A stretch of 63,998 bases of DNA, filler included, from Octopus bimaculoides (taxonomy: Eukaryota): NCBI RefSeq assembly GCF_001194135.2. It is 4 parts of 4 records of this genome, joined end to end, with 100 filler letters (N's around TTAATTAATTAA, not from the genome) between each part and the next. Parts side by side here need not be neighbours in the genome. Positions count along the whole stretch, not along the records: positions 1 to 28,610 come from NC_069005.1; 3 more parts are not named here. One strand, given 5' to 3'. Positions 609 through 19,680 of this stretch are shown here, in pieces. A model generated the notes under the pieces. It saw nothing but the letters and a program-made list of their open reading frames with translations, was not told the origin of the DNA and searched no databases. Each line of letters starts with the position of its first letter. Positions within the stretch are counted from its first letter, which is position 1. The translations under genes and the position numbers were made by a program.

Positions 609-1918
609 GGCTCTTTGATATACACAAAAAAGGACCCACTCCATTTAGCTGCGGGGTCATTAACGATGAACAAGGATACCAGCTCGTGGAAGCGTTTAAT
701 TATGCCGTTGATTACGTTAACAGTAACCGAGGAATTTTTGACAATATCCTTCGAGGTGTCACAATTGGTTCTCTTGCTGTGGATGTCTGCCAAAGTCCAA
801 CCAAAGCTGGTAACATCGTGACAAATCTACAAAACAAGAACGCTCATCTCTTCGACAATGCCACCAACTCTTTCATCGATCCAGCAGATTTCCAGGTTTA
901 TGTCGGACCCTTTGATAGCGAATCTTCCCTACGCGTTGCAGATATTCTCACTAAATTAGGAATCCCTCAGATCAGCTACGGTGCCACTAGTGCCGAACTC
1001 TCTAGCGATCGGTACCAATTTTTTTCAAGGACTGTTCCGTCGGACAGCAAGCAGGCACGAGCGTTCGTTTCGTTTTTGAAACGCTACCAGATCAAATACG
1101 TCCAATTAATCAGCACTGAAGATACAATTGGACGGTATGGGAAAGAAGAATTTGCCAAAGTGGCCTTCGAAAACAAAATATGTATCACGCAGAACGTAAG
1201 CTTACCACGAGATGAGTTTCTAACTCAATTTGATGCTGATGTCGCAATCAATAAACTTGCCTTACAGGATGAAACAACGGTCGTTGTGCTTTTTGTAACT
1301 AACCCGCGTCTTCTGCTTGTTTCGGCAGAAAAGAACTACGTTATCACCTCGCGTTTTTTGTTTATAGCTACTGACAAATGGGGCGCCGACCCAGACATGT
1401 TACGAGACCTAAATAAACTGTTATCGAAACGCCAAATCGTTATATTTGATGTAGAAACGGCTGATCTACCGGACTTCGATAAATACCTTGATACGAAAAG
1501 TACAAGAGCGAACAACAATAAAAATTGGTTCAACGAGTATTACGAAGAGCTTTATAGCTGTACAACCACTTCCAACGCCTCCTCGAGGTTTCCTACAACG
1601 TGCAGTGGAACTAGCTATCGAACTTTACCTATAGCTCCGAAATATACTCAGGACCCTTACGTACTTTTTGTAGTCAATGCGGTCTTTGCGGCCGCCATCG
1701 GGATTCATGGGGCATTGCAAAACGTGTGTGGACGCGATTATAACATCATCTGTGATCGATTTATATCTTCCGACCAAAGACCTGCTATTCAAAGGTACAT
1801 TCTGTCATCCCAATTTATAGACCCAGGTCTGCAACCATTTTACTACATGAAAGGAAGCGATGACAGCATTCGAGGTTATCATATATATGAACCAGTTGAA
1901 ACCAAACAGTACACTAAC
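609..1918 (+). CDS. Exon 1 in window: nearly the whole first VFT domain (VFT-A)
   Basis: Acceptor tttcag|gg at 608/609 (phase 1), donor aac|gtaagt at 1918/1919. Translates GLFDIHKKG..SCG..VEAFNYAV..DVC..GPFDSESS..IPQISYGATS..FSRTVPSD..ATDKWG..WFNEYY..QDPYVLFVVNAV. Confidence 0.93.
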
Positions 1919-4900
1919 GTAAGTGACATTTTACAGATACAAATAAATATCCAAGTGGCTATGTCAGTGCACGTCATATTTCTCGAAAGGCATCATATAC
2001 AGCTATAATATCGAAGGTTACCTTGGATAGAGAAATTCGAAGGATTGCTTTGGTCCAATGGCAGGACGCTTGTTATATCTACAGGAGATCTAGGTTCGAG
2101 TCTCACGGGTAACCTTCGCCTTTCCCTATCCGAAAGAGTCTTTTTTTTTTCAAACCAATATTTTGCATGCTATTCTTTATAGTTGTAAGCTATGTGCTTC
2201 GGGAACCATTATTCCAAAACAGAATTATTTTATATTTCTCCAAATTCTTATGATGCCCGCAGTCTATCTATCTATCTATCTATCTATCTATATATACATA
2301 TATNNNNNNNNNNNNNNNNNNNNNNNNNNNNNNNNNNNNNNNNNNNNNNNNNNNNNNNNNNNNNNNNNNNNNNNNNNNNNNNNNNNNNNNNNNNNNNNNN
2401 NNNNNNNNNNNNNNNNNNNNNNNNNNNNNNNNNNNNNNNNNNNNNNNNNNNNNNNNNNNNNNNNNNNNNNNNNNNNNNNNNNNNNNNNNNNNNNNNNNNN
2501 NNNNNNNNNNNNNNNNNNNNNNNNNNNNNNNNNNNNNNNNNNNNNNNNNNNNNNNNNNNNNNNNNNNNNNNNNNNNNNNNNNNNNNNNNNNNNNNNNNNN
2601 NNNNNNNNNNNNNNNNNNNNNNNNNNNNNNNNNNNNNNNNNNNNNNNNNNNNNNNNNNNNNNNNNNNNNNNNNNNNNNNNNNNNNNNNNNNNNNNNNNNN
2701 NNNNNNNNNNNNNNNNNNNNNNNNNNNNNNNNNNNNNNNNNNNNNNNTATATATATATATATATGTCATTATTCAGTTTTAATCCAAGATTTTTTACCAG
2801 TAAAGAAAAATCTGGTTTCTAACCTAGATCCAAGGCTCTTTCATGGGAATTTCAACGGCATCTACAGAGTATGTATGTATGTATGCATGTATGTATGTAT
2901 TCGTATGTATTATAGAAAGCAAAAAGAAAATCAGTGAATGGTACCAGATATTTTTCTCTCGCCACAGATCGGCAGTTATAACGAAACCGATAATCTGAAG
3001 CTGGACGCCAGATACAATATAAACTGGTCGTCATCCTGCTCAGCAACCAGCTGCGCCAAATGTATTTTCCCTCCATCGGAACCAACCCATTTTATGACCA
3101 TGAAGTCGCCGAACGATCTCAACTTAGTCGCCGTCTTTGACATACATTTCGCAGACGATAAGGCGTTTAACCAATGCGGCAATTTAAACACGGCTTCCGG
3201 CTTTCAGCACGCTCTAGCTTTCTTCTATGCCATTCGAAACGTCAACAAAAACACTCGGAACAGACTAGCAAGCAGTCTGCAGTTGGGTGGAGTTGCCCTG
3301 GACACGTGTTCGTTACCGGTCACCCTCGGACTGGATGTCTATAGCCTCTTGACCGGAAGCAGTCGATGCAGAAAAAAAGGCGCTAACGAAATAGTGAGTT
3401 GATTTTTATTAGCTTTTATTTGCTTTATTTTTACTCACATCTCTCAGTTAAAACTACAATGATTTTCTTCCATAGCAGTTTATTCATTTATTCAGTTCAT
3501 TATAATGTAATAATAAGTTGTGCCCGTAATTCAAAGGGTCAGCCTTGTCACACTCTGTGTCACGCTGAATATCCCCGAGAACTACGTTAAGGGTACACGT
3601 GTCTGTGGAGTGCTCAGCCACTTGCACGTTAATTTCACGAGCAGGCTGTTCCGTTGGTCGGATCAACTGGAACCCTCGACGTCGTAAGCGACGGAGTGCC
3701 AACAACAACAACAATAATGTAATAAGAAAGGATGTTGAGCTGGCGGAAACGTTAACACGCCGGACAAAATGCTTAGCGGTATTTCGTCCGTCTTGCACGT
3801 TCAAATTCTGCCGAGGTCAACTTTATCTTTCATCTTTTCGGGGTCGATAAAATAAGCACCAACTAAGCACTAGAGTCGATTTATCAATTTGCACCTCACC
3901 CAAAATTTCAGGCCTTGTGCCCATAGTAGAATGGATTATTGTTGTTGTTGTTGTTGTTGCTGCTGTTGATATTGTTGCTGTTATTATTTCAATATTTTGT
4001 ATACCAGATCTTCCCGCCAGCCAGTATCGTCGGTTTCGTACCCAAAGCTAGCAGCAACGCAGTACCAATCGCAAACATGCTGAGAGACTACGGCATCATG
4101 ACACTCAGCCCAAGTGCTACAACGACCAAACTGAGCGACCAATCGATCTACCCTCACTTTCTCAGAACCGTCCCACCAGACGATCTTCAAGCGAAAGTAA
4201 TGATGGATATCCTGAAGAAAATGCAATGGACGTATGTGTCCAGCGTTTATTCGGACAACGAATACGGCAAAAGTGCCATCCAAACATTTCTGAAGGCGGC
4301 CGATAACGACACAGCGGTCTGTGCTACGAAGATAATTTCTATGCCAATGAACGCCACAAACAAGGAAGCCAAAGATATTGTTGAAAGGTTAAATCGCGAA
4401 GCTGGTGCCAGAGCCGTAGTTCTGTTTCTTAAAGACTATCAGATAAGGTGATTGTTTTTTTGGGGTTTTTTTTTAGTTTTTTTTTCTTTCGATTTTGTTC
4501 AATTTATTTAGACGCAGGATGAATGTGGGATTTGAAGGCATGTAAATAAAGTCGTTCTTAGCTAGACTTGCAATCAGGAACCGCCGACAGATTGTTCGAT
4601 TCTTAACACAACAATTGTTCAATTCTTGTCACGATCTCTCTTCGCCACGTCTCCTCTCTATCATAGACAGCATGGAAAAAAAACAGGGAAATTTTTCTTC
4701 TCTCTCACCGACATGACGTCATCTCCCCCGATGTGACGTCATCTCCCCCTGACGTGACGTTATCTCCCCCCTCTTCCGATCTTCCTTCCACCACAGAACG
4801 CCAGCTAAACTCCTTCCTTCAAAGATTTTTAAGACAGATGATGCGTTTTTATTTTCGTTTTCAACAGGCGTAGGAGTGGCTGTGTGGTAAGTAGCTTGCT

Positions 4901-5031
4901 TACGAACCACATGGTTCCGGGTTCAGTCCCACATCGTGGCATCTTGGGCAAGTGTCTTCTACTATAGCCTCGGGCCAACCAAAGCCTTGTGAGTGGATTT
5001 GGTAGACGGAAACTGAAAGAAGCTCGTCGTA

Positions 5032-5064
<33 letters not shown>

Positions 5065-5198
5065 NNNNNNNNNNNNNNNNNNNNNNNNNNNNNNNNNNNN
5101 NNNNNNNNNNNNNNNNNNNNNNNNNNNNNNNNNNNNNNNNNNNNNNNNNNNNNNNNNNNNNNNNNNNNNNNNNNNNNNNNNNNTATATGTATATATAC

Positions 5199-5242
<44 letters not shown>

Positions 5243-5381
5243 TTGCGTGTTTTTCCCCACCAACATCGCTTGACAACCGATGGTGGTGTGTTTACGTCCC
5301 CATATCTTAGCGATTCGGCAAACGAGACCGATAGAATAAGTCCTGGGGTCGATTTGCTCGACTAAAGATTATTATTGCTGA

Positions 5382-5436
<55 letters not shown>

Positions 5437-6308
5437 GTTCGTCCATTATTCAGACTATTATTGCAAGCAGCCAAGGACCTGGATTTGGTCAACCGTTTCG
5501 TGTGGATCGGCAGTGACACATGGGGAAACAACATGTATGTGGTCAGCAACGGTCTGCAAGAGACAGCAGCTGGTGCCATCACCATACAAATCAGATCAAA
5601 GGTACTGAACGGCTTCCTGGAGTACGTGAAACAACTGACATTAGAAAAACACGATGGAATTCCAGACGATTGGTTCTTCGACTTTTATCAGGATATTCAC
5701 AAATGTCGTCTGCTCTTTACTGACAGAGCGAAAAATTACGATAGAATCTGTACTAAAAATGAAGTAATAACAGACGATAAAATACAACAAGATGCATTCA
5801 TTTTCCACACAGTTTTGGCCGTTGAAATGATAGCGATTGGACTCAATAATATCAAAGAGGTAATTATAAGTCTTAGGTGGTTTTAAATAAGTTTGTTTCC
5901 CAACCACATGATGTTAGCTTCTCTCCCGCTACATGACACACACCTTGGGTAAGTGTATTAGCCCCTGCTATGGCCACTGGCCGATCAAGGCCCTGTGAGT
6001 GGATTTGCTAGGTAGAAACGAGCTGGCAGAAACATTACCCCGCCGGGCGAAATGCTTAGCAGTATTTCGTCTGCCGTTAAGTTCTGAGTTCAAATTGCGC
6101 CGAGGTCGACTTTGCTTATCATCCTTTCGGGGTCGATAAATTAAGTACCAGTTAGGTGGTTTTAAATAAGTTTGTTTCCCAACCACATGATGTTAGCTTC
6201 TCTCCCGCTACATGACACACACCTTGGGTAAGTGTATTAGCCCCTGCTATGGCCACTTTATGTTCAGCCCCTTGTGGGCAATAAAGAAATAAGAAATAAG
6301 AAACTGAA

Positions 6309-6341
<33 letters not shown>

Positions 6342-9300
6342 TGTATGTATGTATGCGTGCGTGTGTGTGTGTATTTCTGTTGTATTTGTCACCTACCACC
6401 GCTTGACAGCCGGTGTTGGTTTGTTTTCGTCTACATAGTTTAGAAGTCTTGTAAAAGAGACCGTTAGAATAAATACCAGTTTCAAAAACAAAAGTACTGA
6501 AGTCGATTTGTCCGGCTAAACCTTTCAAGGCGGTACTCCAGTATAGCTACAATCCAATGACTGAAACAAGAAAGCGAACAGAAAAACGATTAAAAGTATA
6601 TCTTAATTGAAAAGTCTTCTGCCACAGCACACTGGAATGGCTCGCAAATAACACACTTCTCAGAACACTTTGATTATTGTTTTCTATTTGAATTGGGGAA
6701 TCTTTTCCCGAAATATTCTAGGATCATTAAACAAGTTATGTAAGGTATTATCTAATCTTTTCTCTTTGTCTTCATTCATTGATATCATCTTACATACTTT
6801 GCCTCACCTGCATTCCTCAAAGATTAAAGTTTCTTTTTATGGAAACATTTGTCTTCTTTACACATAATACTGTAACGTTTCAAACCAACAGCAATTTTCT
6901 AAAATGTTTAGAGTTATAAGCAGATTTCATTTGAGATTCATATATTGAGACTGAAACAATTATAGTGTAGTAGAGTTGAAACTGGTATTTTAAAAATAAC
7001 ACACGTATGCATTATACATGTTTCATTGAGAAGGCGCGTAACTTATTAGCTAGGGTGTTCGACTCACGATCTTAATGTCATGAGTTCAATTCCTGGCGAC
7101 GCATTCTGTCCTTAAGCAAGACCCTTTATTTCACGTTGCTCTAGTTCATTCAGCTAGCAAAAAATAAGTTGTACCCGTAATTCGAAAAGGGCCAGCCTTG
7201 TCACATTCTGTGTTACGCTGAATCTCTCCGAGAACAATTTTAAGGATACGTGTGTCAATGAAGTACTCAACCACTTCTGCGTTAATTTCACGATCGTGTT
7301 GTTCTTTTGATCGGATCAGCTTGAATACTCGTCATCGTAACCGACGGAGAACCAGAGCCAGAACGTGGTCTGGAAGAGATTTTTAGCTGCTATTTTTAGC
7401 AAGTGTAATATGAGGGGGGGGGCCTCTAGGTAAAAGAAAATACAGGAGGATCTGTTAATTATTATTTCATTCAACATATGTCCCTCTCAGATTCACACAC
7501 TTATTGCAGTGGTCCTTAAGTTTTTCTAATCCCCGTATAAAAGAAGTCAGAAGACTGGACCTCCAACCAGGCCTTCCGCGAGACCCTTGAAGCCAGGAAC
7601 TTTTCAGCACCCCTTCGTACCACTATGTAGCATGCTTTCCCTATATTGTCTTTTATATCTCCATGCACATCCTTATTAACATTGCCTTTTCTAAATTCCA
7701 GTGTCGACAAGACAGTACGGTGAGCGTCGCCAGCTGCTTAGCGCTACAGAAGAACAAGAACGCCATAATCTACGACAGCGTTCGTAAATCTCCGTGGATC
7801 GATCTTCATTTAAGTGACGAAGACATTCCTAGTAATTTTTCCTTCAAATTTACGGAATCCGGTTACGGAGATATTGGTTACGACATTATGAATTATCGAT
7901 TCAATATCTACAAAAACAACTATGAATATGTCAGGGTAAGACATCTTCTAGAGTATTATTTACCGACATCGCCTTATATCCGGCCCTACCAGCCTTTTCT
8001 CCCTTCCTTCCTTCCTTCCTTCCTTCCTTCCTTCTTTCTTTCTTTCCTTCCTTCCTCACGCCAGTGTTGGGAGCAATAGGCTCGGGAACAGAAGGGGTGC
8101 AAGGAGAGTATGCCTCTTAAACTTTTGGCGAATGGGATGCAATGAAAACGCTTTTGNNNNNNNNNNNNNNNNNNNNNNNNNNNNNNNNNNNNNNNNNNNN
8201 NNNNNNNNNNNNNNNNNNNNNNNNNNNNNNNNNNNNNNNNNNNNNNNNNNNNNNNNNNNNNNNNNNNNNNNNNNNNNNNNNNNNNNNNNNNNNNNNNNNN
8301 NNNNNNNNNNNNNNNNNNNNNNNNNNNNNNNNNNNNNNNNNNNNNNNNNNNNNNNNNNNNNNNNNNNNNNNNNNNNNNNNNNNNNNNNNNNNNNNNNNNN
8401 NNNNNNNNNNNNNNNNNNNNNNNNNNNNNNNNNNNNNNNNNNNNNNNNNNNNNNNNNNNNNNNNNNNNNNNNNNNNNNNNNNNNNNNNNNNNNNNNNNNN
8501 NNNNNNNNNNNNNNNNNNNNNNNNNNNNNNNNNNNNNNNNNNNNNNNNNNNNNNNNNNNNNNNNNNNNNNNNNNNNNNNNNNNNNNNNNNNNNNNNNNNN
8601 NNNNNNNNNNNNNNNNNNNNNNNNNNNNNNNNNNNNNNNNNNNNNNNNNNNNNNNNNNNNNNNNNNNNNNNNNNNNNNNNNNNNNNNNNNNNNNNNNNNN
8701 NNNNNNNNNNNNNNNNNNNNNNNNNNNNNNNNNNNNNNNNNNNNNNNNNNNNNNNNNNNNNNNNNNNNNNNNNNNNNNNNNNNNNNNNNNNNNNNNNNNN
8801 NNNNNNNNNNNNNNNNNNNNNNNNNNNNNNNNNNNNNNNNNNNNNNNNNNNNNNNNNNNNNNNNNNNNNNNNNNNNNNNNNNNNNNNNNNNNNNNNNNNN
8901 NNNNNNNNNNNNNNNNNNNNNNNNNNNNNNNNNNNNNNNNNNNNNNNNNNNNNNNNNNNNNNNNNNNNNNNNNNNNNNNNNNNNNNNNNNNNNNNNNNNN
9001 NNNNNNNNNNNNNNNNNNNNNNNNNNNNNNNNNNNNNNNCTTAGCGATATTTCATCTGCCGTTACGTTCTGAGTTCAAATTCCGCCGAGGTCGACTTTGC
9101 CTTTCATCCTTTCATGTTCGATAAATCAAGTACCAGTTATGCACTGGGGTCGATGTAATCGACTTAATACCTTTGTCTGTCTTTGTTTGTTCCCTCTATG
9201 TTTAGCCCCTTGTTGGCAATAAAGAAATAAGAAACGTTAGCACACAAGGCAAAATGCTTAGCGGAATTTCGTCTGTCTTTACGTTCTGAGTTCAAATTCC

Positions 9301-11779
9301 GCCGAGGACGACCTTGCGTTTCAGCCTTTTGGGATCGATAAAATCACTACCAGTTGAGTATTGGGGTCCATGTAGTCGACTTACTCACTCCCTCACCCCC
9401 GAAACTGCTGGTCTTGTGCCAAGATTTGAAACCAATATGTTGGCTGTACCTCTACCTCCACCCACCCCCCATCATAATTTGTTACATATGTTCACTTAAT
9501 CTTACAAGATACTTTATTCTAAGAAATTGAAGAGAAAGTAATATTTTGATATTACATGAAAGTAATTGAAAAGAAATGCAAGTAATACAACTATTATAAA
9601 ATAAATTCTTAATTTTTATTTAATTTTCAGATTGGATCATGGGTCGACTCTTTGAACCTAAACATATTGGACTATCGAGGATCTGAATACGCGGATATCG
9701 CGATTATACCACTGTCACGTTGTCCTGTCGGAAGTACCTGCAACTGCCTGAATGCTAAAGCAGAGAAAGTGCAACAGTCAACACCTCAGTCTGATTTATT
9801 AACTTCGGGTGAAGACAAAATATACATTGACCCAGAAACGGGTGCTTTCGTCAATCTTCGGAGCCTCCCGTCTATAGGCGAACGATTCTCCAGCGTCTGG
9901 GGTACCATTGCAACGACATTGGCCGCTCTTGGAGCTTTTTTCTCGTTCTGTTTGTTCTGCTATTTCATACTTTTCTACCCGTTCCGAGGAGGCACAACCA
10001 TTCTGGGTTTCACGTTGATTATTGCTATTACTGGACTCTATTTAATGGTTATTCCGTTCGTCGCTCACGCCACTCCAGAAGTTTGCAGTATCCGAAGGGT
10101 GTTCCTAGGGTTCTTCTACGCTTTGGCCTACGCGGTGCTGGTGGTGAAACTCCTAGACGCCTACCGAAACATCGACAAGGAAGAACTGAAATACAAAAAC
10201 CTAGCACAACCTTGCGGCTTGCTGTTGATTACTCTCTTCATCGTGGCCATCCAGTTGATGATAGCCATCCAGTGGTTAATTCTACAGCCGCCAGAGGTCG
10301 TTAACGTGCCCGTGGCCGGCATGCTGTATCCTCGGTGCGCCCCGCACGACTTCTCCGACGAATCGCTGGTCATCTCATTCGTTTTCATCATGTTCCTTCT
10401 ACTCGTTAACGTTCTGATTGGTTCGGCTACGTGGAACAACCCGAACAACTGCTACGAATCGCAATGGATTCTGGGAATGGTTCTTCTCAGCATCCCCGTC
10501 TGGATAATTTGGTGCTTGATCTCCACTCTCAGCAGCTACAACGTACGAGACATCGCAGTGGCCGGTGGCATTTTGGTCAATGCCACCATATTGCTGGTTG
10601 TTGGACCACTTAACCGACTGAAACTCATGAAGAAGAACAACAACATGCAACCTTCTGAAAAAGACGATTATTATCTTTACGACAGCGGTGAGTAGAGTNN
10701 NNNNNNNNNNNNNNNNNNNNNNNNNNNNNNNNNNNNNNNNNNNNNNNNNNNNNNNNNNNNNNNNNNNNNNNNNNNNNNNNNNNNNNNNNNNNNNNNNNNN
10801 NNNNNNNNNNNNNNNNNNNNNNNNNNNNNNNNNNNNNNNNNNNNNNNNNNNNNNNNNNNNNNNNNNNNNNNNNNNNNNNNNNNNNNNNNNNNNNNNNNNN
10901 NNNNNNNNNNNNNNNNNNNNNNNNNNNNNNNNNNNNNNNNNNNNNNNNNNNNNNNNNNNNNNNNNNNNNNNNNNNNNNNNNNNNNNNNNNNNNNNNNNNN
11001 NNNNNNNNNNNNNNNNNNNNNNNNNNNNNNNNNNNNNNNNNNNNNNNNNNNNNNNNNNNNNNNNNNNNNNNNNNNNNNNNNNNNNNNNNNNNNNNNNNNN
11101 NNNNNNNNNNNNNNNNNNNNNNNNNNNNNNNNNNNNNNNNNNNNNNNNNNNNNNNNNNNNNNNNNNNNNNNNNNNNNNNNNNNNNNNNNNNNNNNNNNNN
11201 NNNNNNNNNNNNNNNNNNNNNNNNNNNNNNNNNNNNNNNNNNNNNNNNNNNNNNNNNNNNNNNNNNNNNNNNNNNNNNNNNNNNNNNNNNNNNNNNNNNN
11301 NNNNCATATATATATATGTATATACATATATATATATGTATATACATATATACGACGGGCTTCTTTCAGTTTCCGTCTACCAAATCCACTCACAAGGCTT
11401 TGGTCGGCCCGAGGCTATAGTAGAAGACACTTGCCCAAGGTGCCACGCAGTGGCACCGAACCCAGAACCATGTGGTTGGTAAGCAAGCTACTTACCACAC
11501 AGCCACTCCTGCGCCAATGTAGCACTTTCGCTACCTTATCGTGTCATCACAACCCGTAGTGGTTTTGGACAGGTCTAAGGCATTCGTTCGTGATATGGGC
11601 AATGGTTTCGTCTCCTTATTATCTATCATTGCTTCTATTTTTATTATTATTATTATTGCCATATTCTTCATGTGTGTGTTTTTTCTATTCTTTCAGGCTT
11701 AAATGATGACGATGTATTCTATGGCAACGGTTATAACACTGGTCCACGTATCAGAGATTACCCGGCATACCCCCAATAG
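609..11779 (+). CDS. Spliced gene (5'-partial): class C GPCR, mGluR-like, with two tandem Venus flytrap domains + 7TM; exons 609-1918, 2968-3393, 4008-4447, 5454-5859, 7702-7935, 9631-10687, 11697-11779
   Basis: All six introns are GT-AG and phases match (0,0,2,0,0,1). Exons sum to 3956 nt, about 1317 codons plus stop. Class C VFT motifs occur twice (FDIH, CG, DxC, SAT, RTVPxD, D-x-WG, WF-x-E/D, QD), followed by seven hydrophobic helices. Confidence 0.9.
2968..3393 (+). CDS. Exon 2: end of VFT-A, Cys mini-linker, start of second VFT (VFT-B)
   Basis: Acceptor ccacag|atc, donor ata|gtgagt, both phase 0. IGSY..SSCSATSCAKC..LVAVFDIH..QCG..GFQHALAFFYAI..LGGVALDTC. Confidence 0.92.
3512..3940 (+). 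mobile_element. SINE C tail (3512-3712) followed by a full SINE A (3737-3940) in intron 2
   Basis: First part matches 7150-7353. Second part has the head gagctggcggaaacgttaacacgcc and B-box-like gttcaaattc. Confidence 0.75.
4008..4447 (+). CDS. Exon 3: VFT-B lobe 1 and hinge
   Basis: Acceptor taccag|atc (phase 0), donor ag|gtgatt (phase 2). SPSATTTKLSD..YPHFLRTVPPDDLQA..WTYVS..DNEYG..VCA..ARAVVLF. Confidence 0.93.
4867..5366 (+). mobile_element. SINE family B (tRNA-like head, CCTTGGGCAAG-type core, internal TA/TG microsatellite spanning a gap)
   Basis: ggcgtaggagtggctgtgtggtaag..gggttcagtccc..tcttgggcaagtgtcttctactatagc; 3' half cttgacaaccga..ctggggtcgatttgctcgact. Confidence 0.8.
5454..5859 (+). 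CDS. Exon 4: VFT-B lobe 2
   Basis: Acceptor ttcag|a (phase 2, completes Arg), donor gag|gtaatt (phase 0). FVWIGSDTWG..AGAITI..WFFDFYQDIHKC..QQDAFIFHTVLAV. Confidence 0.93.
5873..6257 (+). repeat. Identical 106-bp direct repeat (5873-5978 and 6152-6257)
   Basis: ttaggtggttttaaataag...cccctgctatggccact is present twice, with no mismatch found by eye. Confidence 0.9.
5895..6575 (+). mobile_element. Diverged SINE B with nested SINE A (6020-6298)
   Basis: B sequence breaks at ggtagaaac and resumes at agaaactgaaa after an A copy. Confidence 0.7.
7033..7353 (+). mobile_element. SINE family C (tRNA-like head)
   Basis: ggcgcgtaacttattagctagggtgttcg..gagttcaattcc..ccttaagcaag..tttatttcacgttgctc; related copies at 16545-16762(-), 23900-24025(-), 34170-34445(-), 44425-44612(+). 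Confidence 0.7.
7702..7935 (+). CDS. Exon 5: C-terminal part of VFT-B
   Basis: Acceptor ttccag|tgt, donor agg|gtaaga, both phase 0. FKFTESGYGDIGYDIMNY..YEYVR resembles the mGluR F-x3-GD-x3-RYDIMN segment. Confidence 0.88.
9040..9437 (+). mobile_element. Head-to-tail SINE A dimer in intron 5
   Basis: Two gagttcaaattccgccgagg units joined at aataaagaaataagaaacgttagcac. Confidence 0.8.
9631..10687 (+). CDS. Exon 6: end of VFT-B, second Cys mini-linker, stalk and class C 7TM domain
   Basis: Acceptor tttcag|att (phase 0), donor g|gtgagt (phase 1). IGSW..SRCPVGSTCNC, then seven hydrophobic segments with class C hallmarks (TM3 C-x2-RR..Y-x5-K, TM4 IQL..WL..PP, ECL2 Cys, TM6 E and W). Confidence 0.93.
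11345..11515 (-). mobile_element. SINE B 5' half, antisense, in intron 6
   Basis: Reverse complement of the 4867-5035 sequence with about ten mismatches. Confidence 0.85.
11697..11779 (+). CDS. Putative terminal coding exon: GLNDDDVFYGNGYNTGPRIRDYPAYPQ*
   Basis: Polypyrimidine acceptor ttttctattctttcag|gc, phase 1 matching exon 6, TAG at 11777-11779. The preceding intron contains a ~600-N gap that could hide another exon. Confidence 0.7.
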
Positions 11780-12667
11780 TCCTCGAGAACACAGACACAC
11801 AGACACTGTATTAATGTAAGTAGATACAATGGCGTCGCTCTATTTCGGGTTTTGTTTTTACAACTTTCCTTATATAACATATATGTGAATGTGTGAGACA
11901 GCGTATGACTATGTATGCATATATATATATATNNNNNNNNNNNNNNNNNNNNNNNNNNNNNNNNNNNNNNNNNNNNNNNNNNNNNNNNNNNNNNNNNNNN
12001 NNNNNNNNNNNNNNNNNNNNNNNNNNNNNNNNNNNNNNNNNNNNNNNNNNNNNNNNNNNNNNNNNNNNNNNNNNNNNNNNNNNNNNNNNNNNNNNNNNNN
12101 NNNNNNNNNNNNNNNNNNNNNNNNNNNNNNNNNNNNNNNNNNNNNNNNNNNNNNNNNNNNNNNNNNNNNNNNNNNNNNNNNNNNNNNNNNNNNNNNNNNN
12201 NNNNNNNNNNNNNNNNNNNNNNNNNNNNNNNNNNNNNNNNNNNNNNNNNNNNNNNNNNNNNNNNNNNNNNNNNNNNNNNNNNNNNNNNNNNNNNNNNNNN
12301 NNNNNNNNNNNNNNNNNNNNNNNNNNNNNNNNNNNNNNNNNNNNNNNNNNNNNNNNNNNNNNNNNNNNNNNNNNNNNNNNNNNNNNNNNNNNNNNNNNNN
12401 NNNNNNNNNNNNNNNNNNNNNNNNNNNNNNNNNNNNNNNNNNNNNNNNNNNNNNNNNNNNNNNNNNNNNNNNNNNNNNNNNNNNNNNNNNNNNNNNNNNN
12501 NNNNNNNNNNNNNNNNNNNNNNNNNNNNNNNNNNNNNNNNNNNNNNNNNNNNNNNNNNNNNNNNNNNNNNNNNNNNNNNNNNNNNNNNNNNNNNNNNNNN
12601 NNNNNNNNNNNNNNNNNNNNNNNNNNNNNNNNNNNNNNNNNNNNNNNNNNNNNNNNNNNNNNNNNNN

Positions 12668-12726
<59 letters not shown>

Positions 12727-13126
12727 GCAAATATATTATTTATATTATATATATATGCATACACATACATACATACATACATACAAAGACATTCTTGTGA
12801 TCGGTAGCTGTTTGTGTACAATATAAACGTACCAATAACACATTTTTGCGTTATGAGCCAGTGCATGGGGTCTATCTTTCAATGTGATGGGTGCAGCACG
12901 TGAGTGCGTGTGTGTGTGTGTGTGTGACGCAACAGAATCACACGTTGCGATTTGGAATTCTTTAGACCTTTTCTTTCGTTCGATCTTTCTTGATATTCTT
13001 TGTTGCATGAACGGTTGACATAATGCACAGCGACAACAGCAACAACAACGATCCCGCTGCCAGACAATGACGTGTCTTCACGCTCCACAGCTTTCCTGGC
13101 GACAGCAAATGTCGGCTTCTTTCAGG

Positions 13127-13189
<63 letters not shown>

Positions 13190-14069
13190 GTCATTGTTGT
13201 TGCTGCTGCAACTGATGGTGTTGTTGNNNNNNNNNNNNNNNNNNNNNNNNNNNNNNNNNNNNNNNNNNNNNNNNNNNNNNNNNNNNNNNNNNNNNNNNNN
13301 NNNNNNNNNNNNNNNNNNNNNNNNNNNNNNNNNNNNNNNNNNNNNNNNNNNNNNNNNNNNNNNNNNNNNNNNNNNNNNNNNNNNNNNNNNNNNNNNNNNN
13401 NNNNNNNNNNNNNNNNNNNNNNNNNNNNNNNNNNNNNNNNNNNNNNNNNNNNNNNNNNNNNNNNNNNNNNNNNNNNNNNNNNNNNNNNNNNNNNNNNNNN
13501 NNNNNNNNNNNNNNNNNNNNNNNNNNNNNNNNNNNNNNNNNNNNNNNNNNNNNNNNNNNNNNNNNNNNNNNNNNNNNNNNNNNNNNNNNNNNNNNNNNNN
13601 NNNNNNNNNNNNNNNNNNNNNNNNNNNNNNNNNNNNNNNNNNNNNNNNNNNNNNNNNNNNNNNNNNNNNNNNNNNNNNNNNNNNNNNNNNNNNNNNNNNN
13701 NNNNNNNNNNNNNNNNNNNNNNNNNNNNNNNNNNNNNNNNNNNNNNNNNNNNNNNNNNNNNNNNNNNNNNNNNNNNNNNNNNNNNNNNNNNNNNNNNNNN
13801 NNNNNNNNNNNNNNNNNNNNNNNNNNNNNNNNNNNNNNNNNNNNNNNNNNNNNNNNNNNNNNNNNNNNNNNNNNNNNNNNNNNNNNNNNNNNNNNNNNNN
13901 NNNNNNNNNNNNNNNNNNNNNNNNNNNNNNNNNNNNNNNNNNNNNNNNNNNNNNNNNNNNNNNNNNNNNNNNNNNNNNNNNNNNNNNNNNNNNNNNNNNN
14001 NNNNNNNNNNNNNNNNNNNNNNNNNNNNNNNNNNNNNNNNNNNNNNNNNNNNNNNNNNNNNNNNNNNNC

Positions 14070-14620
14070 AGGGTAGGCCCGTTCACTTGCACTATGCTCG
14101 CCACTTTCCTTCACCTTTCAGCAAACTGGTCAGAAGACAACACTTCCCTCTCTAACCTTATTTTCCTTTTCAAGTGAAACTCGAAAAAGTTCATCAGGGA
14201 TTGGCCAAAGAGAAAAATGTTTGTCTTCAGCCCCTTCAGTTTCGTCCATCATACAACCTCTTTCGCCATGGCCACCAGGCATATAAAAACATCCTTTCCT
14301 TCACGGTTAAAAGGAGGCGGCGGGGCGATCTTCACGATGGATTCAGTTGACAGCCAGATCCGTCCCACACGCAACAGCAGGTGTTCGACATAAACCCGCG
14401 TCGTCCTACACGCATCTCGGACATGCTTGGCTGACGGCACTTCCGTACCAGTAAAGATTATCTCGAAAAGGCGGAGCTCCCCGGTAGCACTGCCAAGCCA
14501 GAGATTTTTGGAAATTATCTATCGGTCCCAGACCGAAAGTTCTCTAGAAAAGAGCGACCAGCTGATGTTCTTCAACGCCCAAGGTCTCCCCAAGAACGTC
14601 GTTGCACTTTTCCTCCACTA
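14070..14620 (-). mobile_element. Degraded LINE ORF2 C-terminus, L1/Tx1-like zinc-binding (zf-RVT-like) region
   Basis: Minus-strand translation with stops and a frameshift: KSLAWQCYRGAPPFRDNLYWYGSAVSQACPRC (14504-14412), then VEHLLLRVGRIWL..AKEVV*W. Resembles the W-x5-LP...CPxC motif. Confidence 0.6.
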
Positions 14621-14669
14621 ATCCTCTATAAAAGCTAAAGCAGACGTTCCATAATAATCCTTTGTGCCA

Positions 14670-14846
14670 AAGGCAAAAGGCCTGAAATTTTGTGGGAAGA
14701 GACTAGTCGATTACATCGACCCCAGTGTTTAACTGGTACTTATTTTATCGACCCCAAAAGGATGAAAGGCAAGGAATTTGAACACAGAACGTGAAGACGG
14801 ACGAAATGCCGCTAAGCATTTTGCCCGGCGTGCTAGCGGTTTTGCA
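14670..14846 (-). mobile_element. SINE A
   Basis: Reverse of the A consensus, followed by (AAT)n. Confidence 0.75.
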
Positions 14847-14848
14847 CC

Positions 14849-14909
<61 letters not shown>

Positions 14910-16358
14910 TCTTTCTAATGTTGGCATGATGCCAATATTTTGAGGAAAAAAGTCTGCTCTAAAATAATATTTTCTACATTTTTTTTATTGTCATTGTTTA
15001 TTTTTATTACTTTTTATTTGGCAGCCGGAAGACACAAACAGAAAAAGAACAAAAAATATAAAAGAACAACAAAGAAGAAAAACAGCCACCGAAAAAGGAG
15101 AGAAAAAAAGGAAGATAATCATCTGGCTGTCTTCGGAAATGGTGAGCTCAAGCGAAGAAGAGAAACTAAAATGGAATGCTGAAGCCCGCGTCAGTGATAA
15201 GAACCTACGATGTGTGCATGTGTGTGTTTGTGTGAATGTGTGTGTGCGTGTGTGGTCATGTGATAGCAGTTGTGGTGGCACGTGACTATATGATAGAATA
15301 GCAGTTTTGTATATAACAAAAAGAATAAGTGCTGTGGTTGCATTTAACCGTTTGGTTAAAGTGTGATAATGTTTTGTGATGTTGTTGTTGTTGTTGTTAT
15401 TTAACCCGTGGTCAACAGTGCTTGAGTAGACCTTTGATCATACGTCTGCTCAATCCAGACATGACTAACTCCCCCGCCCTTCTTGTCCCAGTTTGATATA
15501 GCAGCCAAATCTCCCTCAAACTACAGTTCATTGTCTTACAAAATAGAAGGCCACATTCATTAATGCAGTCATACGTACAGCAAGGTCTGAATAGAAGGCA
15601 CGGCTGGAACGTCTTTGATCTGATCACAGAACTGGACTGGGGTTACATAAAAGCAAAAACACCACGATCCCCACTGCTAACACCACTGGGGCAAACCGCG
15701 GTTCCCAGGGACGCATGTGGCCCTTAAGCATCCTTCCGGCGGCTCCCGACAGTCTTCCCTCTATAAATATAACAGATCTTTCTTTAATTGCGGCCCTCTA
15801 ACAAAAGCCCAGGTCTTGTATCTGGCCCGGATATTAAAATGGTCGAGAACCACTGCTCTAGGCAGTCACTGGGCCTGCTAGAAATAACAGCCAAACATCC
15901 CTCAAAATACAGCTTACAGTCTTAGAAAAGGAGAACACGTTGGATAATGTGATCGTGGATTTAGAAAATTAGATAAAGTAGCCGGTGATAAATAAACTAT
16001 GATTAAAATAATACAGGATGGTCATGACCAGAGTGCTGTTGGATCAGGAGCAACCCAGTACTAAACAATATCACACGTACATTGACACACCATCACTACC
16101 TCCGCCATCACCACCACTAGTAGCATCACAAGATTGTATATGTTGGTTTAATCTATCTTTAAGTAAGTTCTCTCTGACGTTTCGGTCAGAACGTTCCCCA
16201 GTTTCGTCAAAATTCAGTGTTTTTGTTTATTTGCTGCCCGTTTCTCTCCTGCCCTTTTTGCTGCTTTCGTTCGAACTCAACTAATTTAACATTCCATTCT
16301 CAAATTTTTGTATTTTAAATAAAGACTGTTTTCTATTTTTCAATAATTCGTTGTTGTT

Positions 16359-16360
<2 letters not shown>

Positions 16361-16453
<93 letters not shown>
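16361..16453. repeat. (CT)n microsatellite
   Basis: Direct reading. Representative of dozens of di-, tri- and tetranucleotide tracts in the window. Confidence 0.95.
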
Positions 16454-16455
<2 letters not shown>

Positions 16456-19400
16456 GGTCCACCTCACTCTCACCCTATCTAAACATATATCTCCAAACAC
16501 GCGTACATGGATGAGTGGAGGTATAGATAGACAGATAGATAAGCTTTCAAATGATGCCACCCCACTGGCTGAATGGATAGGCCAATAATCCCTCTGAACA
16601 GGACGCCTGTTTTTCGCGGTGTTACCTATTAACAGCCGAGTGAACCGGAGCGATAGGAAATGAAATGTTTTGCTCTAGAAGAGGAAGCACCGCTGGTCTT
16701 GGAATCGAAGCAATGATCTTGTGATGGCGAGTATAATACCCTAACCACTATGTCACGTGTCTTCAGAATTTAAAACACTGGGAGAAAAGTGGTGTCAGGG
16801 AATCTAGAAAGATCGATTTATTGATACATTTAAGAAAATTATAAAATTTGACATTTTGGAACACATCACCTCGAATCGGATCTGTCGTGTTAATGAGAGG
16901 AGAACTTATCTCCACTAAAAGAGAGCTGCACAGAGAACTATATCTTGGATAAAGAAGGAAAAGAAGGAAGTGCCGTCCACAGATGTTACGGTTATTCGAT
17001 ATGTAATCCCCTGGAAAGATATGGATGAATACGAGATAGGTAAATGGATTTCTACATTTACGAGTTGACTGTTGAAGTAGAAGCCGTGTGGCTGTATGTG
17101 ATTCTAGGCAGAGACGAATCTAGGAAAGAATAGCTGACCTTAACTTTGTGTATATCGAAAAGTTCACAGTATTTATTTTTCGGTGGGAAATGTCTTATTG
17201 GCGTCAGGAAAATTCCCGACTATGTTCATTAAAACAACTAAATTATATGGTAGATTACACCAGAATCCCTTTTTCTTCGTGTTTCACTTTTGGTGTTGAA
17301 TAAATGTTGAATGAATATCATAGTAAATACTTCTAATCAGCACATCGCCACAAAATGAAGAGGACTCGTTGAATAAGTCCGTCTGACGATAACTTGAAGA
17401 CTTAACTAACTGCGATTACGTGGTATATAAATATCGCTGGGGTGGGGTTAATCATAATTTTTTGTATTTTAATTTCGTGTTTTCATTTGACTTTCTATAA
17501 GTGTATTCATTACTCGTTTGTATTTAAAGCTAGTGATATAAGTAGGAAGTTGATTGTTAATAGCTTAAGTACAACGGTTAAGTTTAAACAAAACGCCTTA
17601 AATATTCCTGTTAAATATTTTCTAAACTTATGCATGGCGTGGTCTTTTGTTTTACGTGAACTTTCAAAGCCGTTGTTTCGGACACTCCTGGGATATTAGA
17701 GGTTGGGTCGCTTTTGAGGTATGTCAAGGATAAACAATGTATCTGTGCGTGTGCGCCTGCATGCGTGTATGGATGTATGTATTTATGTATTTATGTATGT
17801 ACGTAAACTGTTACAGATTTTATGACAAACAACCAAACGGTAATTTATTTCGGGAGAAAATATTTCACACAGAAACCGATTAATTCGTTGGTATATTTAC
17901 AAAACAAGAAACGTTGCTTAACATATTCAATAATCGTCCAGTCAAGATTCCCACACATTCCTTTTCTCATCCTTAGTTTTCTTACTTCTTTCAGATATTC
18001 TTTACATTTTTCTGCTTGTTATTTTGGTGTGGAGGAGGTTGAGGGCTGAAAATCTTTTATCATCCTTAATAAAAAAGAAATCGTTTATTTACCTTACCAA
18101 TTATATTCCTCCACGCTGGATTTGTTCGTTATTGTTGTTAACAACCATCTACTACAGCTGGCTAGGAATATATATATTCTAAGTCGTGTGAACCGAAAAG
18201 TGGTGACACTGCGGAACTGAAGGGGGAGCTGAGCAAGAAGGATCTGAGAGAACCTTTATGGCCCTTAAATTGGATAAGCACGCAGTTGCAGATTTTAGCG
18301 AAGACGTTTGCGGAAGATTAAAGTCTGTGGTCGGTAGTGTAAAAGAGAGGGCAAAAATCTGGTAGATATCCATCCGTGGCATCTCTTAGTAATTTACTCT
18401 AGTGATTTGATTTTATAAATATGGTACATATTTTATTGACCCACAAGGGAAACAAAAGGTGGAGTTGGCAACGGTGGGATTTGAACTCAGAACCTAAAGA
18501 CATATTTTCAGGATGCTGCTTGCTCAATTCACTGCCATCCTCCCACCACCACCACCACCACCCAACATCACCACCTCTCCTCTCGCTACGCCACCTTTCC
18601 TCTTTCCCTCTCTTGTCCCTTTCTTTGCATTCTGTCATCTTCTCCCCCTCCACCCTCTCTCTCTTTCTCTCTTACCGCCGTCACACTCACTGCTCTTCTC
18701 TCCCTCCTCCTTTACTTTGACTACTCCTACATATTCTTCCCCCCACTCTCTCTCTATTCTTTTACCTTATCATTTTCCTCTCAGAACTCCATCCTACCCC
18801 TATCCCCCCCATACCGCTCAATCGTCTCCATTTTATTCTTTACATCGCTCATTTCCTCTCTTTCTCTCTCTTTCTCTCTCTCTCCCACTCACCCTCTGTT
18901 CGCCTCTCCCTCTCTCAGTCTCCTTCTACCTACCTACCTACCTATCTATCTATTTATCCACTTACCTACCTATCGTTCTCTTTTCTTCATCTCTCCGTCT
19001 CTCTCCCTATCTCTCTCTCTCTACTCCCCTCCCTGCCTCTGTTACTTTCTCCCTTTCGCTCTCTCTCTCCCTCTCTATATTTTTATCTCTCTCTCTTTAT
19101 ATATATANNNNNNNNNNNNNNNNNNNNNNNNNNNNNNNNNNNNNNNNNNNNNNNNNNNNNNNNNNNNNNNNNNNNNNNNNNNNNNNNNNNNNNNNNNNNN
19201 NNNNNNNNNNNNNNNNNNNNNNNNNNNNNNNNNNNNNNNNNNNNNNNNNNNNNNNNNNNNNNNNNNNNNNNNNNNNNNNNNNNNNNNNNNNNNNNNNNNN
19301 NNNNNNNNNNNNNNNNNNNNNNNNNNNNNNNNNNNNNNNNNNNNNNNNNNNNNNNNNNNNNNNNNNNNNNNNNNNNNNNNNNNNNNNNNNNNNNNNNNNN

Positions 19401-19643
19401 NNNNNNNNNNNNNNNNNNNNNNNNNNNNNNNNNNNNNNNNNNNNNNNNNNNNNNNNNNNNNNNNNNNNNNNNNNNNNNNNNNNNNNNNNNNNNNNNNNNN
19501 NNNNNNNNNNNNNNNNNNNNNNNNNNNNNNNNNNNNNNNNNNNNNNNNNNNNNNNNNNNNNNNNNNNNNNNNNNNNNNNNNNNNNNNNNNNNNNNNNNNN
19601 NNNNNNNNNTCTTATAAAAGAATTCGTCCTATTATTGATTTTT

Positions 19644-19680
<37 letters not shown>

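Follow-up and report, generated by a model that had tools for sequence, protein, structure and literature searches.

In class C GPCRs, a rigid nine-Cys domain (CRD; Pfam NCD3G) is regarded as essential for passing closure of the VFT on to the 7TM domain; the classic exception is provided by the GABA-B receptors. The mGluR CRD is tied by a disulfide to lobe 2 of the VFT. The side chain of glutamate is bound by Arg78, which contacts the distal carboxylate, and by Lys409 (mGluR1 numbering). Class IV mGluRs possess one VFT and an ordinary CRD. In proteins of this class (e.g., Drosophila DmXR/mangetout), Arg78 is replaced and the backbone contacts are kept, which points to a ligand that is an amino acid but not glutamate; their sequences are well conserved overall, and a multi-VFT form is not mentioned (PMC6307864). 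A recent survey assigns the ANF-only architecture to the GABA-B receptors (PMC12716839).

Gene model and domain order

The window (the whole stretch of DNA that was analysed, 63,998 nt) contains the 3' part of LOC106868777 from Octopus bimaculoides, which codes for an mGluR-related class C GPCR. This part specifies VFT4, VFT5, a stalk, the 7TM domain, and a short tail (Table 1). The joined model comprises 1292 aa and shows 100% identity to the NCBI protein for LOC106868777 (P0001). The gene has five tandem VFTs, and not only the two (VFT-A and VFT-B) that had been recognised in the preliminary description; VFT-A is the fourth and VFT-B the fifth. Scans of the window gave no Rfam or tRNA match.

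Table 1. Coordinates of exons and protein features of LOC106868777 in the window
Feature	Position	Strand	Description
VFT-A exon	609-1918	+	Nearly all of VFT-A; stop-free frame, splice sites, Pfam ANF_receptor match, 100% identical to P0001
Lobe-2 Cys of VFT-A	1181-1183	+	NKICIT; aligns with the lobe-2 Cys column
Junction exon	2968-3393	+	Last VFT-A strands, mini-CRD A, connector of ~25 aa, first ~110 aa of VFT-B; one frame
Mini-CRD A	3028-3063	+	SSSCSATSCAKC; Cys codons 3037-3039, 3052-3054, 3061-3063
VFT-B exon	4008-4447	+	Backbone-binding KASS, SATT, VPPD, EYG; lobe-2 Cys TAVCAT
Lobe-2 Cys of VFT-B	4320-4322	+	TAVCAT; within exon 4008-4447
VFT-B exon	5454-5859	+	…FVWIGSDTWG…; joins 4008-4447 over an intron with gap 5065-5183
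VFT-B exon	7702-7935	+	CRQDSTVSVASCLALQ…NYEYVR; followed by an intron with gap 8157-9039
Large exon	9631-10687	+	End of VFT-B, mini-CRD B, stalk, whole 7TM domain to …YLYDS-G; donor 10688
Mini-CRD B	9709-9747	+	PLSRCPVGSTCNC; Cys codons 9721-9723, 9739-9741, 9745-9747
Cys-free stalk	9748-9891	+	48 aa; conserved (I/Y)-x-D-P-x-T-G hairpin-like motif; juxtamembrane P…R-F…W motif (alignment A2)
7TM domain	9892-10644	+	TM3 Cys (EVCSIRR) and ECL2 Cys (YPRC), typical of class C; Pfam 7tm_3
Last small exon	11697-11779	+	(G)LNDDDVFYGNGYNTGPRIRDYPAYPQ and stop codon; joined over an intron with gap 10699-11304

The first of these exons follows an acceptor at 607-608 and begins in phase 1, and the exon preceding it lies in an assembly gap upstream of the window. 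The junction exon leads from the end of VFT-A (IGSYNETDNLKLDARYNINW) through a three-Cys motif to the start of VFT-B (…LNLVAVFDIHF…). Exons 4008-4447 and 5454-5859 are connected by a phase-2 split codon (AG plus A, Arg). In the large exon, the end of VFT-B (IGSWVD…IIPLSRC…) is followed by the second motif, 48 Cys-free residues, and seven TM helices. The DDVF motif of the last exon also occurs near the C-terminus of two relatives (P0002 and P0003).

Pfam matches the model twice with ANF_receptor (PF01094, E = 1.1e-82) and once with 7tm_3 (PF00003, E = 1.5e-27; 97 bits compared to a cutoff of 33.5), and AlphaFold2 places seven helices at H555-H805. The Cys residues of TM3 (C619) and ECL2 (C703), a putative pair, are invariant in alignment A1. 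The best solved relatives by sequence are mGluR7/8/4 (E ~1e-72), and the best Foldseek matches are full-length mGlu3/8/5/2 (E ~1e-45). In both types of PDB search the mGluRs are followed by T1R3 and CaSR, and no GABA-B chain is found among the matches listed (60 by sequence, 50 by fold).

All five residues which bind the amino-acid backbone (S165, T188, D208, Y236, D318) are kept in VFT-B and four of the five in VFT-A, as read from a MAFFT alignment; the S165 and Y236 columns were shifted in some units aligned by hmmalign. The Arg of classes I-III at position 78 is replaced by Asn in both VFTs. A Cys in VFT-B (SSRCRKK, codon 3367-3369 in the junction exon) aligns with the loop Cys of mGluR7, and we take its position to be that of the inter-subunit disulfide of mGluR1 (C140). 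This dimer-type Cys is invariant in the last units (C99 of A1) and absent from the others, and the membrane-proximal VFT is the only one which carries both the dimer Cys and the full set of backbone-binding residues. Judged by these residues, VFT-B is the most mGluR-like module.

Three-Cys clasps, lobe-2 Cys, and the Cys-free stalk

The preliminary description had proposed that a three-Cys mini-linker follows each VFT and that a Cys-free stalk of about 50 aa leads to TM1. Direct translation of 3028-3063 and 9709-9747 confirmed the two motifs (mini-CRD A and B, here also called clasps), and the stalk in exon 9631-10687 proved to have 48 aa and no further CRD Cys. Mini-CRD A was correctly located and reads S-S-S-C-S-A-T-S-C-A-K-C; it has 12 aa, and one Ser had been dropped from the earlier 11-aa spelling. 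Mini-CRD B reads P-L-S-R-C-P-V-G-S-T-C-N-C. The nine-Cys domain of about 60 aa which mGluR, CaSR, and T1R have between VFT and TM1 is absent, only three Cys residues following each VFT. NCD3G was detected neither in the whole model (Pfam, no match at E <= 0.1) nor in five mini-CRD segments (no match at E <= 10), while a rotifer CRD used as control was found with 2.9e-13.

The clasp has the form (P)-x-S-x-C-x(2-6)-C-x(1-2)-C, is about 12 residues long, and is found exactly at the position where NCD3G starts in mGluR, CaSR, and T1R. The regular expression C.{2,6}C.{1,2}C has two matches in the model, both at VFT ends, compared to a mean of 0.10 in shuffled versions (P(>=2) = 0.0045). In mini-CRD B, the Ser and the three Cys residues are invariant in alignment A1 (10 last-unit segments). 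The counterparts of mini-CRD A in the two closest relatives, which are probably cephalopods, read TSCPETTCPKC and TSCQEPSCPKC, and the motif is also kept in P0002, P0003, and P0019, among others.

Both VFTs keep the lobe-2 Cys, as had been noted before (coordinates in Table 1). In the first alignment of units, the corresponding column holds a Cys in 21 of 21 cases, as it does in the canonical class C proteins. Across the family, 128 of 144 units have this residue, including both VFTs in the window. Exactly three linker Cys residues are found in 116 of the 128 units with the lobe-2 Cys, compared to none of the 16 units without it, eight of which have two linker Cys residues. The totals are odd, and unexplained by simple pairing, in four units with a single linker Cys and in eight units with four linker Cys residues plus the lobe-2 Cys. 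In several lineages, loss of the lobe-2 Cys is accompanied by loss of one linker Cys, and the 16 cases may correspond to 5-7 independent losses. The shared fate of the lobe-2 Cys and the third linker Cys supports a putative disulfide between lobe 2 and the clasp, which we infer from this co-variation. The earlier view, in which the repeated module is a VFT with the shortened beginning of a CRD that is tied to lobe 2, is thus supported by the sequence context, by the recurrence of the motif, by the absence of NCD3G, and by Cys co-variation.

Distribution of the architecture among animals

A search for homologues with the same motif, as suggested in the preliminary description, was successful: in 43 multi-VFT relatives there are 133 complete VFT units, and 104 of them terminate with S-x-C-x(2-6)-C-x(1-2)-C, which is expected 8.8 times in shuffles over all 88,831 aa. 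The trait is not peculiar to the octopus and is widespread in the family, which has members in molluscs, a nemertean, a flatworm, Trichinella, chelicerates, Saccoglossus, and amphioxus. The nine-Cys domain was detected in none of the 43 multi-VFT relatives; the pattern occurs in eight of the 169 retrieved relatives, all of them canonical receptors with a single VFT. The orthologues with five VFTs have 2730-2925 aa with a motif every ~490 aa, and the connectors from a clasp to the next VFT have ~15-25 aa. Across phyla, the units cluster by their position in the protein, and for position 4 the best match is position 4 itself in 132 of 132 cases.

Transcript-like evidence comes from species other than octopus. 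P0002 is encoded by one uninterrupted ORF on a Logan contig (its translation was confirmed), and the Logan contigs for P0023, P0028, and P0045 (8.6-10.2 kb) have the length of one ORF. Cephalopod relatives show close conservation, which includes the exon boundaries: the orthologous exons P0177 and P0178 begin at the same IGSY position as exon 2968-3393, and the orthologous exon P0176 is 59% identical to exon 9631-10687.

A word-indexed search with the last exon found one protein, and the family was revealed by an exhaustive search of representatives. Its members are annotated as "uncharacterized" or "hypothetical" or carry automatically assigned mGluR names. Searches of the literature, which included locus names and papers on GPCR repertoires, found no published description of class C receptors with tandem or multiple VFTs, and the multi-VFT mini-CRD family is apparently undescribed so far. 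As a tentative and rather speculative proposal, it may represent an ancient, bilaterian-wide fourth architecture of glutamate GPCRs (beside ANF+NCD3G, ANF-only, and Cache+EGF), in which clasps stapled by disulfides would link lobe 2 of one module to lobe 1 of the next in chains of up to five, which would allow a single receptor to integrate several chemical cues allosterically.

Signal relay and comparison with known systems

The data as a whole are best explained by a class C GPCR with five VFTs, a clasp after each module, and a relay anchored to lobe 2, for which we estimate a probability of about 75%. One Cys of each clasp would be disulfide-bonded to the lobe-2 Cys of its own VFT, as in the mGluR CRD, and the other two would be bonded to each other. 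The chain would thus leave each VFT fixed to lobe 2 and enter lobe 1 of the next VFT or, after the last one, the 48-aa Cys-free stalk and TM1. The receptor is most likely a disulfide-linked dimer. VFT-B, which keeps all five backbone residues and lacks Arg78, would sense an amino-acid-like ligand other than glutamate, and the distal VFTs may be accessory or modulatory binding modules. Movement of lobe 2 would reach the 7TM domain through the clasp and a short stalk, probably flexible or docking to ECL2, in place of a rigid CRD rod. It is reasonable to assume that the relay to the 7TM domain would differ from that of mGluRs.

Two readings question the basis of this model. Mis-assembly or gene prediction might have merged two or more adjacent class C genes, or a pseudogene in decay, with the CRD exons hidden in assembly gaps. 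The octopus assembly is indeed rich in gaps (11 inside the piece), none of which is filled in GCA_001194135.2 (L001; same contigs, same gaps), and the NCBI model is clearly wrong near VFT3, where junk residues span a 2.4-kb gap; this gap is located immediately upstream of the window and conceals the end of VFT3 with its clasp. However, all assembly gaps fall in introns and the frames join correctly; those at 2304-2747, 5065-5183, and 8157-9039 are inside GT-AG introns with matching phases. Both VFT exits are within single uninterrupted exons, and since each clasp is part of one stop-free exon, no CRD can be spliced between the motif and the part which follows. The 1292-aa model is colinear with a homologue which a transcript-like contig encodes in a single unbroken ORF, and departs from it only by a loop of 10 aa close to one of the junctions. 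The intron which matches octopus 7936-9630 has just 105 nt in a gap-free orthologue contig from a cephalopod (L003). With more than 40 proteins of many phyla sharing this architecture, an artefact is largely refuted and we consider it extremely improbable. Quite unlikely, though less so, is that the three-Cys motif is an independent small knot, a metal site, or a source of inter-chain disulfides at the VFT exit, being neither a CRD remnant nor tied to lobe 2. This would agree with the failure to detect NCD3G, with the low confidence of the AlphaFold2 models (see below), and with a weak zinc-ribbon-like match in the segment of one relative (E = 0.024, below the cutoff). It would also agree with the alignments: in the comparison with canonical CRDs that the preliminary description had called for, hhalign (profile-profile, applied to the stalk) aligned the juxtamembrane/TM1 part alone and found no homology to the CRD core, and MAFFT is ambiguous in that it can match the last two Cys residues of the clasp with CRD Cys 2 or, alternatively, with Cys 5 and 6. 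Likewise, hhalign gives no support to the view of the stalk as a CRD core that has lost its Cys residues and can still be recognised, and a colinear phmmer alignment to solved relatives is driven by the flanks. The P-x-S-x-C context, in contrast, stood up to the comparison, as it is that of canonical CRDs and is separated from the last VFT strands by an equal distance; together with the position of the clasp, it supports a probable homology to the CRD start. The paired losses of lobe-2 and linker Cys residues also argue against a motif which is independent of lobe 2.

A further reading concerns the relay itself: all five VFTs might bind ligands, and the closing of a distal VFT might be transmitted mechanically via its clasp, anchored to lobe 2, into lobe 1 of its neighbour and in the end to the 7TM domain, so that several ligands are integrated. 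The clasp and the lobe-2 Cys occur in nearly all units and at every position, the inter-module connectors are short, VFT-A has four of five backbone-binding residues, and each of the five positions has been conserved since before the mollusc/nemertean/flatworm split. On the other hand, octopus VFT2 has lost most of its amino-acid-binding residues, the dimer Cys is confined to the last unit, and AlphaFold2 predicts no rigid coupling (pTM 0.53 in the run which covers the inter-VFT clasp; 0.53-0.59 across runs). We thus regard such a serial relay as unlikely and prefer a relay from VFT-B with accessory distal modules. The AlphaFold2 runs were based on shallow alignments (8-10 sequences) and gave pLDDT values below 50 for clasp A, 61-69 for clasp B, and below 50 for the stalk, in which a weak beta-hairpin is seen; at this low to moderate confidence on the clasps and low confidence on the stalk, the disulfides, the geometry between domains, and the signal relay are matters of inference.

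In a family close to the mGluRs, the nine-Cys domain is cut to a three-Cys clasp, the lobe-2 anchor Cys is kept, and the module is multiplied up to fivefold, an architecture which is conserved in flatworms, molluscs, chelicerates, acorn worms, and amphioxus. This provides a natural experiment on the portion of the CRD that relay requires and on how tandem VFTs might combine signals. These large orphan receptors are candidates for chemosensory or neuromodulatory roles in cephalopods and other invertebrates.

Among more distant systems, the bacterial sensor kinases BvgS and EvgS have serial VFTs before a membrane-embedded signalling domain (PMC4352136, PMC5573083). They belong to an unrelated periplasmic-binding-protein lineage with histidine-kinase output and have no Cys clasp, so that the resemblance is an analogy only. 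Class C-like VFTs coupled to other outputs are known from Venus kinase receptors (PMC3703292); these differ from the octopus protein in having one VFT and a kinase domain, and no 7TM domain. Two multi-VFT proteins from bivalves (P0011 from Sinanodonta, P0012 from Pinctada) have the module of VFT and three-Cys clasp before a single TM helix and no 7TM domain. As in GABA-B receptors, the VFT of the octopus protein is connected to the 7TM domain by a short stalk without a nine-Cys domain, but by sequence and fold the protein is nearest to the mGluRs, and it has a lobe-2 Cys, a Cys clasp, and five VFTs. With class IV mGluRs it shares the lack of Arg78 and the retained backbone-contact residues. 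Like mGluRs in general, it has the VFT fold with three conserved intradomain Cys pairs, the lobe-2 Cys, the P-x-S-x-C exit, a dimer-type Cys in a lobe-1 loop of the last VFT, the residues S, T, D, Y, and D in VFT-B, a juxtamembrane P…W motif, and a 7tm_3 domain that includes the Cys pair of TM3 and ECL2. Unlike mGluRs, which have one VFT and NCD3G, it has five VFTs, a three-Cys clasp for each of them, a Cys-free stalk before TM1, Asn at the equivalent of Arg78, and a very short C-terminal tail.

Gene model and continuity across the assembly gaps

Translation of the plus strand gives SSSCSATSCAKC for the first three-cysteine motif and PLSRCPVGSTCNC for the second, each inside a long stop-free stretch. 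A gene model built on GT-AG splice sites joins to 1292 aa (see the table). The exon carrying the first motif runs in unbroken frame from the last strands of the upstream Venus-flytrap domain, VFT-A (IGSYNETDNLKLDARYNINW), through the motif to the start of the membrane-proximal VFT-B (…SPNDLNLVAVFDIHF…). The exon carrying the second links the end of VFT-B (IGSWVD…), via the motif and a stalk of 48 Cys-free residues, to all seven TM helices. Because both motifs lie inside single uninterrupted exons, the DNA excludes a skipped exon for the nine-cysteine domain (CRD; Pfam NCD3G) between motif and downstream part. The expectation that no such exon is skipped was thus borne out, with intron phases matching.

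A phase-0 intron occupies the equivalent site in both VFTs (1918|2968 and 7935|9631), directly before IGS(Y/W), where exons of the cephalopod orthologue also begin; otherwise, VFT-A is encoded by one 1310-nt exon and VFT-B by five. The donor GTGAGT at 10687-10695 overlaps an in-frame stop (…DSG-E-*), and retention of the intron after 10687 would end the protein four residues on, without the conserved DDVF tail (11697-11779).

All four assembly gaps in the gene are intronic, and intron phases agree across each (e.g. AG|A = Arg over the intron with gap 5065-5183). The newer chromosome-scale octopus assembly has the same gaps, none of them filled. Over its full length, the model is 100% identical to the NCBI LOC106868777 protein of Octopus bimaculoides (P0001; 2189 aa, named "uncharacterized protein"). 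A single unbroken ORF on a Logan contig of 6.4 kb, probably a transcript, encodes a colinear 2027-aa homologue (P0002), which near the gap-spanning junctions differs from the model only in a 10-aa variable loop. The closest relative found (53-61% identity), on a gap-free ENA contig (L003) probably from another cephalopod, shares the octopus exon boundaries, and its counterpart of octopus intron 7936-9630 is only 105 nt long. We conclude that the mRNA should be continuous across the gaps, with no CRD exon concealed in them.

Two interspersed repeat families were seen. Each copy of the ~190-bp family (three copies, 93-97% identical) abuts an assembly gap, so that this repeat is the probable cause of the breaks in the assembly. 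The second family (83-92% identical) has two copies in introns of the receptor gene and more at the larger octopus locus (L001). Window positions 11800-28610 yielded no convincing coding sequence, tRNA or Rfam match, and consist mostly of microsatellites ((TATG)n, (CA)n, (GA)n, (ATT)n) and low-complexity sequence, with seven assembly gaps.

Coordinates of features in the window and at the larger octopus locus (L001)
Feature	Sequence	Coordinates	Remark
Exon	window	609-1918	+, GT-AG model
Exon	window	2968-3393	+, GT-AG model
Exon	window	4008-4447	+, GT-AG model
Exon	window	5454-5859	+, GT-AG model
Exon	window	7702-7935	+, GT-AG model
Exon	window	9631-10687	+, GT-AG model
Exon	window	11697-11779	+, GT-AG model
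Three-Cys motifs	window	3028-3063, 9709-9747	+
Inter-subunit-type Cys	window	3367-3369	in SSRCRKK
Assembly gaps	window	2304-2747, 5065-5183, 8157-9039, 10699-11304	intronic
~190-bp repeat	window	4866-5063, 11319-11515, 26194-26384	second copy inverted
Second repeat family	window	6021-6154, 9040-9383, 20566-20907, 26648-26847	
Second repeat family	L001	13556-13806	
VFT3 exons	L001	9226-9441, 10646-10918, 13038-13436	
Region with the bridged 2.4-kb gap (LOC106868777)	L001	9226-16175	upstream of window; P0001 residues ~835-872

The three-cysteine clasp and its predicted partner

The three-Cys motif ending each VFT, here called the clasp or mini-CRD, recurs in homologues, as the preliminary description had asked of its S-x-C-x(4-5)-C-x(1-2)-C pattern. 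The regular expression C.{2,6}C.{1,2}C matches only at VFT ends in the first 13 family proteins. Among 43 multi-VFT proteins (88,831 aa) it matches at 104 of 133 complete VFT C-termini, with 26 further matches elsewhere, some of them at junctions with an incomplete HMM envelope; the shuffled set gave 8.8 matches in total. For the octopus model alone, 2 matches compare with 0.10 expected from shuffles (P = 0.0045). The spacing is kept in the two closest relatives, probably cephalopods (TSCPETTCPKC, TSCQEPSCPKC, SHCATGGTCNC).

Alignment with the mGluR CRD places the clasp at its start: the first Cys follows the same (P)-x-S-x-C context, and in seven canonical receptors the consensus reads PxSxCSxxCxxGExK…CCWxCxxC. 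The remaining CRD cysteines are indeed absent after each VFT, as first noticed. NCD3G did not match any of five mini-CRD segments even at E <= 10, and detected a rotifer CRD used as positive control (2.9e-13). The nine-Cys pattern occurs in no multi-VFT member and in 8 of 169 retrieved proteins, all canonical single-VFT receptors.

In mGluRs the nine conserved CRD Cys form internal disulfides and a single one with the VFT (PMC9138782). The VFT partner, the lobe-2 Cys, is invariant in a first alignment of 21 units (VFT modules with linker), beside three VFT Cys pairs common with mGluRs. Where it is present (128 of 144 units), 116 of the 128 linkers have exactly three Cys; in the 16 units lacking it, the linker never has three Cys, but two in eight units, one in four and no Cys in the other four. 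These losses are phylogenetically clustered, amounting to roughly five to seven independent events, among them two Trichinella units, one Logan-contig unit and unit 3 throughout the four-VFT clade of chelicerates (P0045, P0048, P0049, P0050, P0052, P0070). This unit 3 lost its third clasp Cys along with the lobe-2 Cys, leaving S-x-C-x5-C. This even-number rule (3+1 or 2+0) is indirect evidence: it would be expected if the lobe-2 Cys were bonded to one of the clasp Cys, with one disulfide within the clasp. Chelicerate unit 3, in effect a double mutant made by nature, could serve to probe the proposed bond. Units off the rule are the single-Cys units and a C-x3-C-x2-C-x2-C variant.

This four-Cys variant (e.g. 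CTAWCPKCYTC) is found at inner junctions of a three-VFT clade (P0013, P0079, P0128, P0134, P0139) and is similar to CCWxCxxC, the core motif of canonical CRDs; with the lobe-2 Cys its count is odd, outside the simple pairing scheme.

Stalk lengths within the family range from ~25 to 75 aa. In the octopus subclade it has a conserved (I/Y)-x-D-P-x-T-G-x-x-V and, just before TM1, P…R-F…W; AlphaFold2 places a weak beta-hairpin at D-P-x-T-G (pLDDT below 50, shallow alignment). When compared with the canonical CRD-TM1 region by hhalign, only the juxtamembrane and TM1 part aligned (probability 82%), which points to a CRD middle that is missing or beyond recognition, its first residues and juxtamembrane segment alone apparently being kept.

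The octopus receptor and its modules

P0001 reaches ~900 aa further upstream than the window model, and exons of three further VFTs were located at L001 by tblastn with P0001, P0002 and P0006. The third VFT is partly missing in assembly gaps. The NCBI model bridges a 2.4-kb gap by apparently meaningless residues (…RRSSRFLKNLSHGSLKRPQATVKTKLTLGLTSTSRSTTGAIWVQTAPSAIRLWTIG), so most of VFT3, together with the clasp that ends it, is absent from P0001. The first half of VFT1 probably corresponds to a gene called separately further upstream (L001 1-193, ANF_receptor). Read in this way, the octopus gene encodes five VFTs, VFT-A being the fourth and VFT-B the fifth, and the full protein is likely to have ~2,800 aa, as in orthologues.

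In mGluRs, a Cys forms the inter-subunit disulfide (PMC8310541). A Cys of this type is invariant in the last, membrane-proximal unit and never occurs in units 1-4 of five-VFT proteins. The backbone-contact residues (S165, T188, D208, Y236 and D318 in mGluR1 numbering) are all kept in VFT-B, four are kept in VFT-A, and most are lost in VFT2. Both VFT-A and VFT-B have Asn in place of Arg78. Replacement of Arg78 with the backbone contacts kept resembles class IV mGluRs, for which non-glutamate amino-acid ligands have been proposed (PMC6307864). From these residues we infer that VFT-B may act as the main sensor and as the dimerising module, and that the distal VFTs would play an accessory part. 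An AlphaFold2 model of the tandem VFTs (pLDDT 80, pTM 0.53, clasp A below 50; shallow alignment) did not pin down a fixed VFT-VFT geometry.

Family distribution and relation to known receptors

The last exon, used as query in an exhaustive search (E <= 1e-10), retrieved 128 representatives, which a unit HMM parsed into proteins with five VFTs (2730-2925 aa; Babylonia, Physella, Bulinus, Argopecten, Sinanodonta, the nemertean Tubulanus, the nematode Trichinella pseudospiralis, two Logan contigs), four (2200-2390 aa; Limulus, Centruroides, Ornithodoros, Dinothrombium, the hemichordate Saccoglossus), three (about 1600-1850 aa; Branchiostoma, Mizuhopecten, Patella) and two (about 1250-1410 aa; Branchiostoma and others). 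Further members come from the flatworm Macrostomum lignano, Dreissena, Tegillarca, Candidula, Elysia and Plakobranchus. In databases the proteins are named "uncharacterized" or "hypothetical", or carry an automatic mGluR label.

Units cluster by position across species (32% mean identity for the same position vs 23% for different positions; units at position 4 match best among themselves in 132/132), so that the five-module layout is older than the mollusc/nemertean/flatworm split. Between octopus VFT-A and VFT-B, identity is 25%. Two bivalve proteins, P0011 (Sinanodonta) and P0012 (Pinctada), have two VFT-clasp modules followed by a single TM helix and no 7TM; the module is thus also in use outside GPCRs. 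Both have a cytoplasmic tail, of about 600 aa in P0012.

Pfam finds two ANF_receptor domains and 7tm_3 in the octopus model, and no NCD3G. By sequence, the closest solved structures are mGluR7/8/4 (E ~1e-72), with T1R3 and CaSR much weaker. A GABA-B identity was rejected; no GABA-B subunit is among the 60 solved-structure matches listed. The AlphaFold2 model from VFT-B through 7TM (mean pLDDT 76.8, shallow alignment) has full-length mGlu3, mGlu8, mGlu5 and mGlu2 as best fold matches. We found no description of tandem-VFT class C receptors or of these loci in the open-access literature, and one may exist elsewhere. mGluRs are the nearest relatives, and the octopus protein may work in a comparable way. 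A recent survey (PMC12716839) recognizes three metazoan architectures and no others: ANF+NCD3G, ANF-only and Cache+EGF. Because it lacks NCD3G, the octopus tandem-VFT receptor is not placed in the ANF+NCD3G architecture, nor is it a GABA-B receptor.
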